Source: Penicillus capitatus | Lineage: Eukaryota > Plantae > Chlorophyta | Length of the DNA: 64,000 bases | NCBI GenBank assembly: GCA_965649825.1 | Contig: OZ287707.1 | Location: forward strand, 550,292 to 614,291 | Reading direction: 5' to 3' | Made by a program: the position numbers and the translations under genes | The notes under the pieces: model-generated | Told to the model about the DNA's origin: nothing | What the model saw: only the letters and a program-made list of their open reading frames with translations | Database searches by the model: none | Shown here: in pieces, positions 290 through 63,387 of the stretch | Layout: the number at the start of each line of letters is the position of its first letter | How positions within the stretch are numbered: the stretch's first letter is position 1

Positions 290-1859
290 ATGTTGCTTGA
301 TGTCTCGATTCTGCGGCTACTCGGTAAAGATGATTTTCGCGTCCTGCGCGCCGTCGAACTCGGAATGCGCAATGTAAGCGGATTGTACGTTTGGTTGCCC
401 ATAGTGATGTGGTGAGTGTAGCACGAGATCGTTCCGGTGCCCCTGATCGTGCAGGTGGCCCGTCTGAGACAGACTCTCTCCCTACGCTCCATTCGCGAAC
501 TGTTGAAGCACAAGCTGCTGCATCACGAGAATGTCCAATACGACGGATATCGCTTAACGACAGCTGGATATGATTTTCTGGCCATTCACACTTTGGTCTG
601 TCGCGGGAAGATTTATGGTTTTGGTCGTCGGATAGGAACGGGAAAAGAATCGGATATCTACGAAGTGCACAACGAAGCGCATTTCCAGAGAGGTGAAGCG
701 ACATTGGATATGCAGGTGACAAATGAAGAGGGGGAAGTTATGGTCATGAAACTGCATCGACTGGGGCGCATTTCTTTTCGCGCCGTCAAGAATAAACGGG
801 ATTACCTGCGCCATCGCAAGAATTTCAATTGGCTTTATCTGTCTCGACTAGCCGCTCTCGGAGAATACGCCTTCATGACGGCGCTCTCCAAAAGAGGCTT
901 CCCCACTCCAACACCTATCGATCAGAACAGGTACGTGCTCTCATGCCTGAAATCCATCTTCGCCATAAGAAGCACCTTTAGGCATGTCGTGTTAATGTCG
1001 GTGGCAAAGGGCTATCCCTTGTCTCAGATAAGGACGATGGGACATCCAGATATGGTGTTCGAGAAGATCATGCATTGGTTTGCTAAGTTTGTGGAAGTTG
1101 GTCTGGTGCATTGCGATTTCAACGAGTTCAATATCATGATCGATGAGGACGAGGAGATCACGATTATTGATTTCCCTCAAATGGTATCGGTATTCCACGA
1201 CAATGCCGAGGAGCTGTTCAACAGGGACAGACAATGCATCATCACGTCTGCACGATGATACAGTTGGACGCCGAACACGTTTCTGTCTGTTCTTAGTTTT
1301 TTCAAGAGGCGGTTTCATTTCGATCCAGATCGGGATGCACCTGAGGAAGCTGTTTGTCCTGAGTTCCGTTCCTTGATGGAGAGATACGGCGAGTTAGCGT
1401 CGTCGCAAGATGTGGACAGTCCGCTAGATCAGGAACTCCATGCGTCGGGTTTTAAGCGATCGCACAGAGAGGCGCTCGCGAAGCATGCTCAGGGAGACGA
1501 TCTTGATGAAGTTTCTTTTTCGGAAACGGCCTCGATCGATTCCGCATCGACAGACGCTGAGAAATCCGATGGGTACATCGCCTTGATATTTCTCTTGGCA
1601 AACGGATCGCATGTGTGAACAGAGAATACAGAGATAGCGAAAGAACAACGGAAGAGACGCTTCAGCCGATGACTTCTCTTTCAGGCAGCACCAAAAAAGT
1701 GCGTCTCTCTTCTTTTAGAACTGCCCCATGTGTCAGGCTTAGGATGTGGCCCAAAGAGTGACGCTCGAGCAGAGAAGAATGATGGCAAAGAGCATCAAAC
1801 ATCGTCGTTCCAGGAATAACAAGGACAAAAGACACAGCAAGCATTCGATAACGATGTAG
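290..1859 (+). CDS. RIO2: RIO2 atypical Ser/Thr kinase (40S biogenesis), spliced
   Basis: MLLDVSILRLLGKDDFRVLRAVELGMRN|HEIVP N-terminus, GKESDIY, KLHRLGRISFRAVKNKRDY, VHCDFNEFN, IIDFPQMVS. About six GT-AG introns of 44-51 nt. The basic C-terminal exon ends at TAG 1857-1859. Confidence 0.93.
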
Positions 1860-15390: not shown

Positions 15391-16355
15391 ATGCGATTAC
15401 GCGTTGTGCAAACGCAGGGCGTCTCACAAAAGCGGGGGCTCTGCAGACGTACTGTCCCGAGAAAAAGAATGGCGACCGGTGCAAAAGTTGAAGCAAGGCA
15501 ACAGATGATGGTCAGCAGATGACAGGGATCTGTGGAAGGAGGGATTGGTTCTTGTTTGGCGTAGATACATGTGCCCCCTCACCCTTTGGTGAAACATTGG
15601 ATGGCGATAGCGCGCAACTCCTTGACGCCATCCTCTATGTTTCGAGGCGCCGTGGCGGAACTGGGCCGGATATTGCTGTACGAAGCCGCACGGGATTTTC
15701 TGCCAGTAGTGGAGGCGGTGGTAAGCACGCCATTCGCGGAAACGTCCGTTAGCTATATCGACCCGACGAAGCCTGTCAAAGTGACCACACTCCGAGTGTC
15801 TCTCCGACTGACCTGTGATGGGACGTCTGTAGTTAGTGCCCATCTTAAGAGCGGGTCTCGTTCTGTGCGAACATGCAGATTCGGTCATCCCTGCAAACGA
15901 GACTTACCACATAGGCGTCCAGAGAGACGAATCCACGCTAAAGGTCTGTCGATATCTGCAGAGCACATAAAAAGACATTGCTGCGTGTAGCCACGTCTCT
16001 ACTATACGCGGCTACCGTCATCTTTCTCCCCTGATGATCTTATCATCGTCACAGACGTCATGCTTGCAACAGGTTGCACAATTCTGTTCTCTGTGTGAGA
16101 GCAAGTGAGTGATCGCTATCAGGCGGCTCGATGATGTTTGTATTGGACGAGATTACGCGTCGTGGCGGCTTAGCAAAGAATATTCGCGTTGTCTGTGCCG
16201 TGGCAGCCCCTCCTGCTCTAAAGAAAATGTCGGAGAGTTACCCTGATATCCATGTCTATGCGGGCATCATTGATGCCGAGTTGAACGAGAAAGGATACAT
16301 CGTTCCCGGTTTAGGAGATGCCGGAGATCGTGCCTTCGGTACTCTGCGTCCTTGA
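15391..16355 (+). CDS. UPP: uracil phosphoribosyltransferase, probably plastid-targeted
   Basis: PPHPLVKHWMAIARN, ELGRILLYEA, GIIDAELNEKGYIVPGLGDAGDRAFG. The upstream exon looks like a transit peptide. Confidence 0.92.
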
Positions 16356-16414: not shown

Positions 16415-18294
16415 TCAGTGAGCACTTGGGTGTATATATGCAAGTATAACGCCTTGATTATTATCATCAATCTCTGCGCACAGTCCATCACTCTTCAGGA
16501 ATTCCAAAACAGCTGGACGCAAGACAGGAATATTATCTACACTATTTATGCCCTTTCCTGTAATAATCTTCAATCGATACATAGTCTTTACGTCTTCTAC
16601 GAAAGACTTCAGTCCATTAGTGACTTTCTTCAACCGCGATATGGCTTCCTGAAGGTGGAGATGATGCAGATCGATGGTGTGGGTGTTCACTCTTCCCAAG
16701 TTGCTGGCTTCAAAAGCCAACCGCTCTGCCTTGTCTGTGTGTTCTCTGTGCAAGAGTATAGCTTCAGTTGATACACGATTGTATTCATCCCCCATTTCAC
16801 GGTGCCCTTCACGATAAGCAGCCCTCGCTTTCTCCAAGTACTCTTCACCCCTCTTCTGTTCCTTCCACGACGCCTGACGATGTTTCTCACTTTCAATCCT
16901 TAAACGCAAACAGAGCTTTGCTGTCAGAAAGCGCAGAGGACACGAAAAAGAGACAATCCAAACCTTAGCTCTGCCTGCTGTTTTTTGAAGTCTTGCTGAT
17001 GCTGCCTTTGATCGATGGGGGATCGTGAACTGGAAATCTCGAGCGACCGCTGTGAGGTCTTACCTCCCACGTGTAGTACCTTATGTTCCAATTCACGTTC
17101 GTCTGAAAGATGCAACATCCCACGGCACGCTGAAGCCGATTCAGTCTTCTCTATCTCTGGGCGTCGTTCAACAGCAGATTTATGATGCATTGAATTCTGA
17201 TTGTGACAGTGATCCCGGAAGACAGGAGCGTCGTGTCTGGAAGAAAAGCTGTCTTGTGCAAGTAGTCGTTGAATCTCGTCGCTTGGTCTTGCATCTGAGG
17301 ACAACTCTTCCAAGGGACTCGGTTGGGATGTGAGATCAAGTCCAACATCATCCTCATCAACCGTCTCTTCGATTTCGTTTTGCTCGGCAAATTTCCTTAA
17401 GGCACTCAATTCGATACCAGTCTCGACGTAGAATTCCTCGTCTGAGAACAGAATCTTGCCATTGTCCATCTTTATTCCCACAACGCCTTCCAATGGAATG
17501 GGAAACACCCATTTCTCAAAGCTTCCTTTGCCTTTCATTGCTGCAATGTCTTTCTTCAGCACCCGTTCAGCAAATGAGATCGTCACGTGTGGATGTGCCT
17601 TGTGAGAACAGAGTTCGTGAGGACCCTTCAAAGCAACCTGCTGGGCGACGACGCCACATTTCTCTCCATAAGCCAACAGCTTCACCGTTTTTCCGAGAGG
17701 GATCTTTAAAAGAGCTGCGGCACTTGGGTGGTGCATCAAACTCATGTGATCCGCCGAGACTCGGCTCAGTTTGGGAGTGCATTTCTCCAACAGGGCCTCC
17801 TTGCTTGCTCGATTCAGATACACAGCAGCAGAGGATACGCGCCAGGTTGGGATCTGTTCTAACAGCTCTTCTTTTGTTTTACACGGTAGTTGAGGTTTGG
17901 TCAACGGTCCCTTCTTCTTTTCTATGGGATGCGTCTGCATGTCGACGGGCGTTTCTGGCGGTGGAAACCATTTTCGCGAAGGTTTTTCGAGTTCGCCCCA
18001 CGAGGCCGTTGCATCTTCATAAAGCTTCATGACGTCCATCACTTCTTGTATATGAGATGACGCAGAGCCGTCAAGACGCAAGAGTCTATCCACGAAGGTA
18101 CCGTTGTCTTGACTTGACTTTTCGGTGGACGGCGGGCCATCAGACGAAAAGAAACGCCACAAATCATTTGGTTGAGGAGAAGGAAGTCGCTTTCGCATAG
18201 CGCACGGACGCGGATGCGATAGAGAGGACGACGGAGTCGGAAAAAGTCGATTCCATTCGGTAAACTCCACGTCTTCAGCAACGCACCGAAACAT
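16415..18294 (-). CDS. 2H phosphoesterase + DUF1771 + Smr domain fusion protein
   Basis: The N-terminal half has two HxS/T motifs (DHMSL, PHVTI). The C-terminal exon has YLEKARAAYREG...AFEASN (DUF1771-like) and TIDLHHL...IITGKGINS...LRPAVLEFL...NQG (Smr). A 65-nt GT-AG intron joins them in frame (ELR|IESEK). The start is uncertain. Confidence 0.75.
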
Positions 18295-21081: not shown

Positions 21082-23298
21082 TTAGTAGTAACTCGCAACA
21101 ATGCGACGATGCACCGCCGTTCGTGCAGTGGCATCGGACACTTTTCCATCGTCTACGATGCAATAGGTAATCCAATGATCGGATGTTTCCATTCGACTCT
21201 TGACGGTGCATTCCATGTAAGCAATGGCTTTCTCCAGAATGGGAGAGCCGTTGTTGGACGGAAACCAATCCACGCCATCGAAGCGATCCTGTCCCGGTCC
21301 AAAGCGCTGGAGGAAGTGCTTCATGATTGGACCGTAGGACATGGCTCCAAGACAATTGAGCGCAAAGGAATCGCCGACTTGGAGGAGACTCTCGATGGCA
21401 CGATCCTTAGCCACGGCAATGGTGAATCCCAATGGTTCAAAACTCGCTTGGGCGACCCAACTGGCGACCATGGCGCTGCGAACGTCGCCATGCGCAGCAG
21501 TGACGATATACAATCCACTGGAGATCTTGGCCAGTGCCTTGGAGACGTCTGCCGACATACTGTCTTTGACTTTGCTTACTGTCTCTTTCTTTGTCAGCGC
21601 CTGAGCAAGATCTGTACCTGCTTCCTCAAATGCTTGGTAGACGAGTTCGTTGGGCGATTCCTTGACGCGTAGAGGATCCATCGAGAGGAAGGCACCGACG
21701 CTGATGAGATTTGAGCGCAATGTATCGACCGGTTCATCTGTGCCGCCAAAACTCTCGGCAATCAAGATCTGTGTGCCAGAAGGATATCTGCTCTGTCGTT
21801 TGTTTGGAGAATTCTCACCTTCTGTTTTGGTTTTACGGCGGAGAGAAGGAGTCCCATTGTTTCCTGTGCTGCGGTCGACGTGGTGGGTGGGGACATGACG
21901 ACGATCCCAACATTTCTTTTGAGAATTTCTACCAGTTCTTGTGGATCCACCGACAAGAGGTCGACCATCTCAACACCGACGCCTAAAAATCTTTGCTTAT
22001 TCACCATCACACTATTATTTGAGTGACCAGATTTCGTGATGCCCTTTGCGATGGATTGACCCAATCGATCGCTGAATCCATAATCGCTGCTGTACAGAAG
22101 AGCAACGGATGCAGGCGCCTTGCCTATGGCTGCACTCCAATCACGGTAGCGCTCCACGAGCTCGACCATGTTATAGCTGCGCAAACAAACACCCTCACCA
22201 CAGAGTACAGCAGGAGGCATGTGGTACTTGATGAGAGGACCATGACCATTGGCAATCGTATGATATGGAAGGTCTTTGATTCTTTTGAGGGCTGTTAGCA
22301 CAGATCGTGCATTTGGCTTCATCAGGCAATCATAATAGAATCGATAGTGCGATTCGATCTCGGACAGATGCGAATCGAAGGGGTCCTAAACAGCACGAGC
22401 TCTATCCAAGCACACCCCTTACCTGCCAGTCGTGCAGAATTGACCTGGGTACAGTAGTGCAGGCCAAAGGCATCGCAGGTGAAGAGGATTCCTGTTGCCG
22501 GATCAAAAGTAAACATCGTGTCTGGCCAATGCAGATTTGGTGCTGGAATGAACTGCATCTCGTGTCCCTGTCCCAAGTCAATCACATCACCTCCTTTGAC
22601 AGCTTGGGATCGAAAAGAGCGATTCGTCAAACCCTCCAAAAACTGAATACAAATCTAGATAACGCGCAGAACTGTCATCTGTTCGGCACAAAACGCATTT
22701 CTGACCTTTGTCCCCACAACCGTGGCATCTGGAAACATGTCCAGAATTTCAGGGATGAGTCCTGAATGATCCGGCTCTGTATGCGAAACAAAGATGTAGT
22801 CGATCGATCGATCGTGTCGATCAAGTTCTTCTTTCATCGTTTGGATATACAGTGGATTGAATTTTTCGTGAGAGGCATCGATCAGAGCTGTCTTGTCTCC
22901 CATGATCATATACGAATTGTAGGTGGTGCCATTTTGAAGGCCGAATTCGATATCGAATCTTTCGCGGTCCCAGTCCAGCGAACGAATGCAGATGGTGTCC
23001 TGGGCCAACTGAAAGTGCTGGGTCTGCAAACGTCTGTTGTCATTCCACAGGGACACCTCTGACATTTCGTAGCCGATCTTCTCCTGTTGAACGACGTTAC
23101 GCACTCAAGACGGCATCATGCGATGCGTACGGGTGTGATGGACACGGATGCGTGTGTGCGTACAGAAGGCCGCTTTGCAGAGGCATTTTGGCGTAGAACC
23201 CGGTCGTGTGGTGTTTTGCAGCTATGCGTTGTTGGATGATCGAATCCGAGACGCGAAGCGACCCGTAGTGTCGCGCATTGTGCGATTCGTGATGACAT
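21082..23298 (-). CDS. FLVB: plastid flavodiiron protein, Flv3/FLVB type
   Basis: RSLDWDRERFDIEFGLQNGTTYNSY, canonical diiron motif HTEPDH, HWPD, CDAFGLH, a flavodoxin domain, and a C-terminal flavin-reductase domain (SGLYIVT, ASWVAQAS, DHWI). Confidence 0.9.
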
Positions 23299-60953: not shown

Positions 60954-63387
60954 ATGATGCTGCGTCCGGCGAAGTGCACTTTGGCTGTCGTCTTGTTATG
61001 CATCGTTCTCCCCATAACAACGGCGAAGGAAGGAAAAAAGCAGCCAAAGGCGGCCAAAGGTAACAGGAAGGACGAGCCATTTGGAACGAAGGGGACATCT
61101 TAAACACCCCTCCGCTCTCTAACTCGCCTAAGAACGCGCAATTTTGTTAATGGTTTTGCGAATCGACCATTGGTACTGCGATCGTAGAGAGATTTGAACC
61201 CTGCGACTACTGCTATGCCCTGTTCAAACTGCAAGCGGAAACACGAGTGGATCTGAAAGGCAATTCATCGGCAGAGGATATACCGGGAAAAGTGTCCATC
61301 CCTTTCGATGTCTGACACGCTGCTCGTGACTCCCGTACTGATGGGCGTTCTGTAGCCGTGCGCACCGTTCGAGAAGAGATCCCAGAAACAGTGCATCGAC
61401 TTTGCAGCTGCCTATGGTGAGAAATAATGCCGATAATGTCCAGAGTGAAAAAGGGGTCATGTGTCAGCTCCCGTGTGGTTGGCGCAGATGTCACATGGTT
61501 ATGATTTTGCGGAAGAGTACTGTCAAGAAATCCTCGTTTGTAAGGCAACCCGATTTCATCGCCCTTTTTACACATCTCAAGGATTCTGCAATAAATGCAA
61601 GGCGAGACAGAGCAACCATTCATCAGATGTGGTCGGACAAACACAGTGTCCACTCTGTTCTTAGGAAGTGGCCAGTGCAGCGCTTTTCGTTTCCTCGGAC
61701 GCTTCAGATGATGTACTGCAAGATGCCATCGCTATCTTCATGTGCAAAACGCTCAAAATGGAAGGCTTTGGAGACAGTCCCTGCATCGCTGACATGCTTA
61801 AGGCATTCAGGGAGGTAAACTTCATTGTTTGCTCCCATAAGACGTCATGCAGTCTGATGAATGATCCAGGTACCTGCAAAAAGGCCGACAAAGGATTTGA
61901 AGCCAGGAGAGATCTGTCGAATGTTTGGAACATGTGAGACTTACGCAAAATGGTATCCTTCTAGACCCTCTGCTGGTTACTTCCACGAAGTTTCCGTCGC
62001 TGAAAGAAAAAGGATCAAGGCTGCGCCATACGGTCCACATGTGGAGGAGAGAGAACGGACGATTTCGATCCCAGCAATCCCGCAGACTGAGTATCGAGAA
62101 ACACACTACGTGAAGACACGTGCAGGCTATGCGCTCCCAATGTTCAAAACGGGGAAATTTCCCGAGTGGTACAAACCGTTGTTACCACCACAGGCGAAGC
62201 CGGAGAAAAAGAAGCACCAAAAGAGATGTACATCAAAGAAGAAGAAAGGATGTGGAAGAAAGAAAGGCCCGAAGAAGCATGAGAAAGCTAAAACAGAGCC
62301 AAGTCCACTACCAAGTTCAACTCTAACGGCGGAATCCAAAATAGAAACGACAACACTTCCAACAGTCGAGGTGCCGTCCGAGTCGCCCGAGATCGAGGTG
62401 GAGCCGTCCGAGTCGCCCGAGATCGAGGTGGAGCCGTCCGAGTCGCCCGAGATCGAGGTGGAGCCGTCCGAGTCGCCCGAGATCGAGGTGGAGCCGTCCG
62501 AGTCGCCCGAGATCGAGGTGGAGCCGTCCGAGTCGCCCGAGATCGAGGTGGAGCCGTCCGAGTCGCCCGAGATCGAGGTGGAGCCGTCCGAGTCGCCCGA
62601 GATCGAGGTGGAGCCGTCCGAGTCGCCCGAGATCGAGGTGGAGCCGTCCGAGTCGCCCGAGATAGTGGTGGAGCCGTCCGAGTCGCCCGAGATAGTGGTG
62701 GAGCCGTCCGAGTCGCCCGAGATAGTGGTGGAGCCGTCCGAGTCGCCCGAGATAGTGGTGGAGCCGTCCGAGTCGCCCGAGATAGTGGTGGAGCCGTCCG
62801 AGTCGCCCGAGATAGTGGTGGAGCCGTCCGAGTCGCCCGAGATAGTGGTGGAGACGTCCGAGTCGCCGGCCACAAAGCCAGTCGTTCCTTCGCCGCGCGA
62901 ACAGAAAAGAGAGAAACTTCATGCAGTGGCGGAGAAACAACGCCGCAGTGAAGTTCCACGGGTGATTCTCGAACCTCATGAACGTACAGTGTCGCTTCCT
63001 ATTATCAGCGAGCCATCTCAGATCTCACCCGAAAGAGAAAGCGACGAGCATGAATTGGACCACGACAATTACGATGGCCCCGATGGCGATCTGGATAAAG
63101 GGAAAGCCGAGACAGGATTGCACAATACACCAGTCATTGGAGACTTGGAGACACAACACCTTCACGATTTCCTCATCTTAAGATCCGGTTCAGCCGATCA
63201 GGCCGAACTCATCCCCCTTCAGATGAAAAGGCAGAGCAGAACTTCCAGACAAAACTCCGATTTCATACGCTTCGGTCGCTTTTCTCGGACAGGAGAGAAA
63301 ATGGGTGCCATGCAGGCGGCAACAGCAATGCGGTTCGATGGCCGTTCAGAAGTCGAGGCAGAAGAAGAAATCTCTGTTGCAGTCTAG
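60954..63387 (+). CDS. secreted double saposin-B-like protein with basic and acidic repeat tail (gene 2)
   Basis: Signal peptide MMLRPAKCTLAVVLLCIVLPITTA. Cys patterns CDYC..PC..QC..YCQEILVC and CNKC..MC..PC..ICRMFGTC, then a K-rich block and about 16 copies of EPSESPEI(E/V)V. Confidence 0.7.
61602..61664 (+). other. probable GC-AG intron in saposin gene 2
   Basis: AAG|GCGAGA...TTAG|GAA gives the saposin-typical CNKCK-EVA. A 36-nt GT alternative exists but inserts 9 residues. Confidence 0.6.
62371..62868 (+). repeat. coding 30-bp tandem repeat, 16 units plus a partial unit
   Basis: GAGCCGTCCGAGTCGCCCGAGATCGAGGTG x9 (the first starts GTG), then GAGCCGTCCGAGTCGCCCGAGATAGTGGTG x7, then a partial unit. 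Confidence 0.98.

Follow-up and report, generated by a model that had tools for sequence, protein, structure and literature searches.

The stretch of Penicillus capitatus DNA analysed here (the window, 64,000 nucleotides of contig OZ287707.1) carries on its minus strand, at 16415..18294, a two-exon gene for a protein of 604 amino acids (aa), or of 572 aa if translation starts at M33, in which a predicted 2H phosphoesterase domain is joined to a C-terminal Smr domain. That a single, expressed-looking and selectively constrained gene encodes this modular 2H-Smr protein is largely shown, and we are highly confident that both the single-gene model and the domain identities are correct; the features observed go well beyond what chance would produce. 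The best explanation of the whole would be a modular enzyme in which the Smr domain makes a cut and the 2H domain then opens the cyclic phosphate left behind, a reading whose chances we put at even. The 2H-Smr architecture has been in print since 2019, and the window protein is an uncharacterised further case of it.

A single spliced gene encodes the 2H-Smr protein

All coordinates of the gene refer to the minus strand. Without splicing, the locus shows two open reading frames (ORFs), one running from the ATG at 18294 to 16924 and the other, in a different frame, stopping at 16415. Excision of a 65-nucleotide (nt) intron at 16963..16899 (GT..AG, phase 2, GTTTGG...TTTAAG) brings both ORFs into frame and yields a spliced coding sequence of 1815 nt for 604 aa. 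Exon 1 (18294..16964) encodes the N-terminal region, the 2H domain and the linker, and its last base is the second of codon R444. Exon 2 (16898..16415) encodes DUF1771-like helices, the Smr domain and the stop codon; the ORF listed for it begins at a TTG within the intron. There are two candidate starts, M1 (18294) and M33 (18198), of which M33 is the likelier because conservation in the alignment begins at PNDLWRFF.

A word-indexed search of 5.8 billion proteins with the window protein returned four relatives only (P0001-P0004). Orthologues at 47-99% identity show the same layout and come from metagenome assemblies, where they lie on contigs as long as 2.2 Mb. P0001, P0002 and P0004 are exon-1 products that end a few residues past ...QAELR/QAKLR because the gene caller read on into the intron. 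P0003, which is 58% identical to the window protein, is encoded by an unbroken ORF of 585 aa on L001 (1884 nt) and comprises the N-terminal domain, the helical region and Smr. It crosses the proposed junction directly (...KQAKLR-AECEDHRQAS...), with no intron in L001 at that place. The 3' end of L001 (1799..1884) holds, in antisense, the last codons of a uracil phosphoribosyltransferase (UPRT) gene (GDRAFGALT and the stop). L001 must be genomic DNA lacking the intron or a transcript that has an overlapping 3' untranslated region, and the ORF is continuous in both cases. At the other loci an intron interrupts the same codon in the same phase, as seen in L002 (39 nt), L003 (64 nt) and L004, the spliced proteins being 557 aa for L002 and 574 aa for L003. 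Even in the distant relative P0006 (L005), exon 1 ends with ...DELR, followed by an intron at the equivalent place and then by the DUF1771/Smr exon.

The initial annotation had read the gene as one reading frame across a 65-nt intron, and the uninterrupted ORF of P0003 together with the same-codon introns of the relatives agrees with this. That an adjacent 2H gene and Smr gene have been wrongly fused by an imagined intron is barely credible: automatic gene callers do give two ORFs at all four genomic loci, but these callers are prokaryote-style and intron-blind, the exon-1 "proteins" of the relatives finish with junk residues from the intron, P0003 is unbroken, exon 2 of the window gene has no upstream ATG of its own, and the GT..AG intron keeps its phase and position in four further loci though its sequence and length vary.

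Selection was assessed from the ratio of nonsynonymous to synonymous substitution rates (dN/dS), computed against the L003 orthologue (89% identical) over four segments and ranging from 0.02 to 0.26. The N-terminal region (residues 33-144) gave 0.26 and the linker (residues 301-444) 0.16; the 2H domain (residues 145-300) gave 0.06 and the DUF1771 and Smr part (residues 445-604) 0.024. Purifying selection is strong on both the 2H and the Smr part. Between the window and L003, the intron has diverged freely in sequence.

The surroundings of the gene are conserved as well. A UPRT gene lies downstream of the 2H-Smr gene in L002-L004, and L003 and L004 have in addition an E2 gene upstream of it and TAF4 beyond UPRT. 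In the window, the last exon of the uracil phosphoribosyltransferase gene (16131..16355, plus strand) converges on the 2H-Smr gene, and the stop codons of the two genes are separated by some 60 nt. Given the antisense UPRT codons at the end of L001, the 3' untranslated regions of both genes must overlap.

Residues 150-300 are predicted to form a 2H domain of the tRNA-ligase type

The 2H phosphoesterase domain (17395..17847, residues ~150-300) was assigned to the type represented by the cyclic phosphodiesterase (CPD) of tRNA ligases and by CNPase. Its first motif, H183-M-S-L (DHMSL), is encoded at 17737..17748 (His183 codon 17748..17746) and its second, H236-V-T-I (PHVTI), at 17578..17589 (His236 codon 17589..17587). 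The histidine positions named by the initial annotation (17746 and 17589) are correct. Pfam at E ≤ 10 places no family over the N-terminal 445 residues, including none of the 2H models PF08302 (tRNA_lig_CPD, 'Fungal tRNA ligase phosphodiesterase domain'), PF13563, PF02834 and PF10469, and sequence searches of the PDB with the N-domain, as a single sequence or as the profiles A2 and A4, gave no 2H match, a chance match to YadA appearing at E 0.97. A Pfam match of the window protein to ALMT (6.8 bits) was taken as spurious.

HMMER, run exhaustively over 1.84 billion representatives with profile A2, which was built from the four orthologues alone, returned 91 proteins at E ≤ 1e-3. The family follows the pattern Y-a-V-F-L-t..S..LL...PP.H..v.ADH[MV]TL...P......LPlG..v.l.v.G...D...QAV.V ... 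PH[IV]T[IV]S.A.G, and both motif histidines with their Thr/Ser partners form its most conserved columns, being kept by 90% or more of the 85 members aligned. H236 is invariant, conservation of T238 and S240 reaches 90% or more, and the consensus of the second motif is P-H-[IV]-T-[IV]-S. Among the relatives, P0015, P0027, P0051, P0061, P0063, P0066 and P0092 reach the gathering score of PF08302, with matches that fall on the stretch aligning with the second 2H motif of the window protein; the link of the window domain to PF08302 is a transitive one, by way of these profile relatives. A word-indexed search with profile A4 gave 25 proteins, mostly small stand-alone CPD-like proteins with precomputed PF08302 annotation.

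The initial annotation had also proposed a structure prediction for this domain. With the four orthologues, AlphaFold gave an unusable model, with a mean predicted local distance difference test score (pLDDT) of 40, and the 38-sequence alignment A4 was used instead. The model of residues 145-305 obtained with A4 shows a 2H fold at a pLDDT of 94.2 and a predicted template modelling score (pTM) of 0.87, and both 2H motifs lie on beta strands (positions 39-44 and 92-97 of the model). When this model was compared with the PDB by Foldseek, all of the 50 matches listed were 2H enzymes, at probabilities of 0.84-1.0 and nearly all at 1.0. The list is led by the CNPase catalytic domain (mouse and human) and includes the KIN-CPD structure of Candida Trl1 (6u05), a phage 2H phosphodiesterase and rotavirus VP3. 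For the CPD of Trl1 itself, too, CNPase has been reported as the top structural neighbour (PMC7145591).

By profile homology and structure prediction, residues ~150-300 are thus a compact 2H domain of the CPD/CNPase clade that retains all four signature residues and is presumably active. The initial annotation had compared the domain to the cyclic phosphodiesterase of tRNA ligases, and profile homology, motif conservation and the model all support this. With the CPD of the fungal and plant tRNA ligases Trl1/AtRNL (PF08302; 6u05) and with the catalytic domain of vertebrate CNPase the domain shares the predicted 2H fold and the two HxT/S motifs on strands. With the Trl1 CPD it shares, in addition, CNPase and Trl1 KIN-CPD as structural neighbours, and it has relatives that reach PF08302 and that follow a kinase domain. 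It differs in that the window protein itself has no PF08302 match, in that the domain is shorter and in that no kinase or ligase was found beside it. The first motif reads HxS in the window protein (HxT in P0004), unlike in Trl1 and CNPase, and an Asn four positions before the second His of Candida Trl1 (PMC7145591) is a Lys in the window protein.

The same module occurs in other settings among its relatives. In long multidomain proteins the CPD-like 2H domain directly follows an AAA_33 polynucleotide-kinase-type domain, as in the KIN-CPD cassette of Trl1, an order that the window protein lacks and that is seen only in relatives, namely P0012, P0017, P0018, P0033 and P0044. Its further partner domains are MJ1316, AKAP7-type 2H, HAD_SAK_1 ('Swiss army knife RNA repair'), R3H, CCCH and RWD. 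In P0010, P0017, P0018, P0033 and P0044, very long RNA-repair proteins, the CPD-like module is the second 2H domain, the order being (RWD)-CCCH-MJ1316-AKAP7-type 2H-AAA_33 kinase-CPD-like 2H-HAD_SAK_1-R3H, and in most of the long RNA-repair proteins Pfam leaves it unmarked. P0022 combines a CPD-like 2H domain with a Cid1-type nucleotidyl transferase and a T4-type RNA ligase, and P0034, another relative from the 2H family, shows a weak CUE match.

The C-terminal part carries an Smr domain of the N4BP2 type

The Smr domain occupies residues 519-604 (16418..16675). It contains the motif D520-L-H522-H (16661..16672; IDLHH, residues 519-523), corresponding to the catalytic D-x-H of Cue2 and NONU-1, and the loop T-G-K-G-I-N-S (16541..16561; ITGKGINS, residues 556-563), corresponding to the small-x-small or GxG substrate loop. 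Pfam recognizes Smr (PF01713) at 27.0 bits against a cut-off of 25.7 (E 5e-6), and the Smr domain of N4BP2 (2vkc) is matched by the single sequence at E 1e-5. The initial annotation had named Smr at this place on the strength of DLHH and ITGKGINS, and these matches confirm it. A profile of eight 2H-linked C-termini matches the N4BP2 Smr domain at E 2e-20 and that of MutS2 just at E 0.3-0.8; the window Smr domain therefore belongs to the eukaryotic N4BP2/Cue2/NONU-1 branch.

D520 and H522 are invariant in ten 2H-linked Smr domains and in N4BP2. G558, G560 and S563 of the loop are invariant, and Lys replaces the Arg of N4BP2 there. The residue after D-x-H is G in N4BP2 and in the algal proteins; three orthologues have H at this place, while P0003 and the L005 relative have L. 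In Cue2, changes of D348 and H350 abolish cleavage and R402K has no discernible effect (PMC6598757). By way of N4BP2, the loop Lys is presumed to occupy the position of Cue2 R402; if the Arg it replaces is indeed the equivalent of R402, the exchange is probably tolerated. The change from DLHG to DLHH, which the initial annotation had thought might alter catalysis, says little about catalysis, because D and H are invariant and the fourth position is variable. That position is simply relaxed in the clade (H or L), and we have dropped the idea.

The region between linker and Smr (16703..16885, residues 449-509) is helical and probably a DUF1771 domain, to judge from sequence matches. PF08590 (DUF1771) aligns to the window protein nearly over its full length (model positions 3-63 of 64) and at the expected place, as the initial annotation had it, but the match is weak and below the Pfam threshold (10.8 bits against a cut-off of 28.7; E 0.64). 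P0008 and P0090 score about 19 bits for PF08590 over the corresponding region, and the alignment to N4BP2 2vkc runs on into it.

Like Cue2, NONU-1 and N4BP2, the window protein has an Smr domain of this subfamily, with N4BP2 as the best solved match, and shares with them the D-x-H motif, the GxG loop and the C-terminal placement of Smr after a helical region. It differs from them in that Pfam finds neither CUE domains nor a kinase of the polynucleotide kinase (PNK) type; a 2H domain is present instead. With 2H in place of the kinase, the end processed by the window protein would be the 3' cyclic phosphate and not the 5'-OH.

The 2H-Smr architecture recurs in algae

Glover, Burroughs, Egelhofer, Pule, Aravind and Arribere listed '2'-3' cyclic phosphoesterase (2H)' fusions among the homologues of NONU-1 in 2019 (bioRxiv 10.1101/674358, section 11). 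Among the matches of the 2H domain there are six further proteins with 2H and Smr, three of them named entries from green algae and three from metagenomes, in addition to L005. The algal entries are Ostreobium quekettii CAD7702553.1 (2H 212-368, DUF1771 635-692, Smr 702-784), Symbiochloris irregularis KAK9804640.1 and Auxenochlorella protothecoides RMZ56024.1 / A0A1D2AGP2. They are annotated just as hypothetical or 'Smr domain-containing'; public annotation hides the 2H-Smr architecture because Pfam misses the CPD-like 2H module in these proteins.

The algal proteins have the same order of parts as the window protein, namely a CPD-like 2H domain on the N-terminal side, a long linker, DUF1771-like helices and a C-terminal Smr domain, and the same motifs, ADH.T. 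and PH.T.S in the 2H domain and D-x-H in Smr. They differ in that their 2H domains are only 25-36% identical to that of the window protein, and in that the window clade has H or L, not G, after D-x-H and Lys in TGxG. By identity, the 2H domains of the algal 2H-Smr proteins, of P0006 and P0007 and of alga-like fragments are mutual nearest neighbours, which hints at one Smr-associated 2H subfamily.

The initial annotation had stated that no characterised protein with this architecture was known. This stands as far as our literature search goes, which found no study of any 2H-Smr protein, but the combination as such is on record, both in the 2019 report and in the three algal entries. It had suggested looking for the architecture across eukaryotes, and the matches of the 2H domain show recurrence in Ostreobium, Symbiochloris and Auxenochlorella.

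A proposed cut-and-open mechanism in translation surveillance

Cue2 cleaves mRNA in the A site of collided ribosomes, and the ends produced by the nuclease of no-go decay (NGD) are believed to be a 2',3'-cyclic phosphate and a 5'-OH (PMC6598757). NONU-1 has been proposed to phosphorylate its own 5'-OH product by its PNK-type kinase (10.1101/674358). The initial annotation had stated that mRNA at stalled ribosomes is cut by Cue2, NONU-1 and N4BP2 and that NONU-1 has such a kinase, and the literature agrees. The processing of the ends made by Smr nucleases is only partly known, with Trl1 and the kinase of NONU-1/N4BP2 proposed for the 5'-OH. For the 2',3'-cyclic phosphate of Smr-dependent decay no enzyme is established, and the 2H-Smr fusion bears on this question. 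Angel1 is rate-limiting for human non-stop decay (NSD) and a candidate for resolving the cyclic phosphate of NSD and NGD, its substrate being unproven (10.1101/2022.04.28.489582). Trl1-CPD and CNPase are reported to open 2',3'-cyclic phosphates to a 2'-phosphate.

On this basis, the Smr domain of the window protein would dock on stalled or collided ribosomes and cut the mRNA in a metal-free reaction to a 5'-OH and a 2',3'-cyclic phosphate. The tethered 2H domain would then hydrolyse the cyclic phosphate of the upstream fragment, the product being, by analogy with Trl1-CPD and CNPase, a 3'-OH/2'-phosphate end. The 3' end opened in this way would become accessible to 3'-to-5' decay or to tailing. 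A coupled mechanism of this kind in translation surveillance, which draws on the analogy with the studied Smr and CPD proteins, falls in our estimate slightly short of an even chance. The stricter version, a self-contained 'cut and open' surveillance nuclease in which Smr cleaves on collided ribosomes and 2H resolves the cyclic phosphate in cis, is a real possibility that we nevertheless hold to be doubtful. By analogy, a 2H-Smr protein would do at the 3' end what the kinase-Smr design of NONU-1 and N4BP2 is proposed to do at the 5'-OH. The job proposed for the fused 2H domain is the one proposed for Angel1, which would act on the cyclic phosphate of the 5' fragment from an Smr nuclease; Angel1 and Angel2 differ in having the unrelated endonuclease/exonuclease/phosphatase (EEP) fold and in being separate polypeptides.

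The fusion has been kept in several lineages, which argues that both activities serve one pathway. A natural fusion of a CPD-type 2H domain with an N4BP2-type Smr domain constitutes 'Rosetta-stone' evidence for both reactions in one pathway. If the proposed mechanism is true, removal of the cyclic phosphate is an integral and selected step of no-go or non-stop decay, not an incidental one. The fusion would then be direct evidence on the end chemistry of Smr nucleases and would give a handle on the responsible enzyme where the two activities are separate. The architecture also points to experimentally tractable organisms, e.g., Auxenochlorella. The mechanistic idea is a direct consequence of known chemistry. 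We regard the finding as useful but not surprising.

Several points weigh against the cut-and-open mechanism. Recruitment to collided ribosomes lacks a domain explanation, because no ubiquitin-binding or kinase domain was found: Pfam at E ≤ 10 gives no CUE, UBA, UIM or other ubiquitin-binding domain in the window protein, no kinase family is found in Pfam, and reading of the 604-aa sequence shows no P-loop GxxxxGK[ST]. To our knowledge, a 2'-phosphate/3'-OH product is not known to aid decay by the exosome, and this step is pure inference on our part. The structural similarity found by Foldseek is moderate, with a template modelling (TM) score of about 0.5 and a best E of 2.9e-3 among the matches listed, and the two motif histidines are 53 residues apart in the window protein as against 85 in the CPD of Candida Trl1 (PMC7145591). 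On the Smr side, the Pfam score lies barely over the threshold, and the usual DLHG, TGRG and HS read DLHH, TGKG and NS. An Smr domain can, moreover, bind collided ribosomes without cutting, as reported for MutS2 of B. subtilis (PMC10897456). The literature search mentioned above provides no studied 2H-Smr protein to lean on. A further weak point is that the N-terminal ~110 residues and the strictly conserved linker motif PSDEIQRLLAQDSFSS have no role in the proposed mechanism.

Alternative functions

Among the alternatives, an enzyme of general RNA repair, processing or conflict that works away from collided ribosomes is unlikely, yet it has to be taken seriously. Such an enzyme would cut tRNA, rRNA, or viral or transposon RNA, and its 2H domain would trim the end. 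The idea draws on the mobility of the CPD-like 2H module, which turns up in 'Swiss army knife' RNA-repair proteins, and on the lack of a ubiquitin-binding domain detected by Pfam in the window protein; Glover et al. propose some eukaryotic Smr proteins as effectors against viral or parasitic RNA (10.1101/674358). A conflict role is hard to reconcile with a gene that is present in one copy per relative's locus amid conserved neighbours and under strong purifying selection, being neither lineage-expanded nor fast-evolving. For a repair role, no kinase or ligase that would complete repair was found in the window protein, where Pfam reports, beside the 2H domain, only Smr and the weak DUF1771. The Smr domain belongs, furthermore, to the DUF1771-linked N4BP2 type, and those members of this type that have been studied serve translation surveillance.

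The Smr domain may instead be a docking or collision-sensing module that does not cut, with 2H as the sole enzyme acting at the ribosome on cyclic ends made by other nucleases. We consider this quite unlikely. The precedent is the MutS2 of B. subtilis, which reportedly binds collided ribosomes via its SMR domain and splits them without cleaving mRNA (PMC10897456); MutS2, however, is matched by the 2H-linked Smr profile just at E 0.3-0.8, the closest solved relative being N4BP2 (E 2e-20). The Smr motifs of the window clade are off consensus (DLHH/DLHL, TGKG and NS), as a non-cutting domain might be, but every 2H-linked Smr domain keeps the D-x-H dyad that Cue2 needs for cleavage, and the Lys that replaces Arg in the loop is probably harmless, again provided that the Arg corresponds to Cue2 R402. 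A candidate substrate under this docking model would be a tRNA with a 2',3'-cyclic phosphate after release of the nascent chain; the Angel1 preprint names the cyclic phosphate of the P-site tRNA as an alternative substrate (10.1101/2022.04.28.489582).

The Smr domains of MutS2 and N4BP2 were originally viewed as DNA-nicking, and the first Smr domain is reported to have come to light in MutS2, which counteracts recombination and belongs to the MutS family of DNA-transaction proteins (PMC3200294). A DNA-nicking Smr enzyme with an accessory phosphoesterase is nevertheless highly improbable: 2H enzymes act on 2',3'-cyclic or 2',5' phosphates of RNA or nucleotides, which DNA cannot form, and all partners of the CPD-like 2H module are RNA-end enzymes.

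Conserved elements outside the domains

The linker of ~145 residues is of low complexity and divergent apart from the 16-residue motif PSDEIQRLLAQDSFSS (17239..17286), whose invariant columns run from P337 to S352 and hold in orthologues down to 47% identity. The motif has no family match in Pfam. In P0006, the linker (about 3400..3560 of L005) shows a PSEEEV... stretch followed by ...LTQQFAGLDKHVARQLLMVSEWNLASAQNYL, which looks UBA-like by eye and has no Pfam match; this stretch is possibly the remnant of a ubiquitin-binding module.

The N-terminal region likewise contains conserved elements without a family match, namely PNDLWRFF (18148..18171), EVMDVMKLYEDATASWG and SRKWFPPPE (about 17960..18040), all on the minus strand. 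SRKWFPPPE is common to P0006 and P0007, whose matches begin at profile positions 27 and 21.

Other features of the window

The window has a G+C content of 49.7%. A tRNA scan and Rfam at the gathering score returned nothing in its whole 64 kb. A multi-exon gene of the flavodiiron type (21082..23104, minus strand) encodes a metallo-beta-lactamase/ODP domain, a flavodoxin-like domain and a C-terminal flavin-reductase domain, the Pfam marks coming from L003 and L004. Three-part flavodiiron proteins with a C-terminal flavin-reductase domain are typical of oxygenic phototrophs. This gene and the green-algal origin of all named 2H-Smr proteins point tentatively to a source in the green lineage or a related protist. 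For a RIO2 kinase encoded at 437..1258, the best identities are 55-59% to proteins of land plants and green algae and 51-53% to those of stramenopiles. Finally, an ORF of 508 aa (61861..63387, plus strand) contains about 17 head-to-tail copies of the 10-residue unit EPSESPEIEV, later EPSESPEIVV, between basic, Lys-rich flanks.

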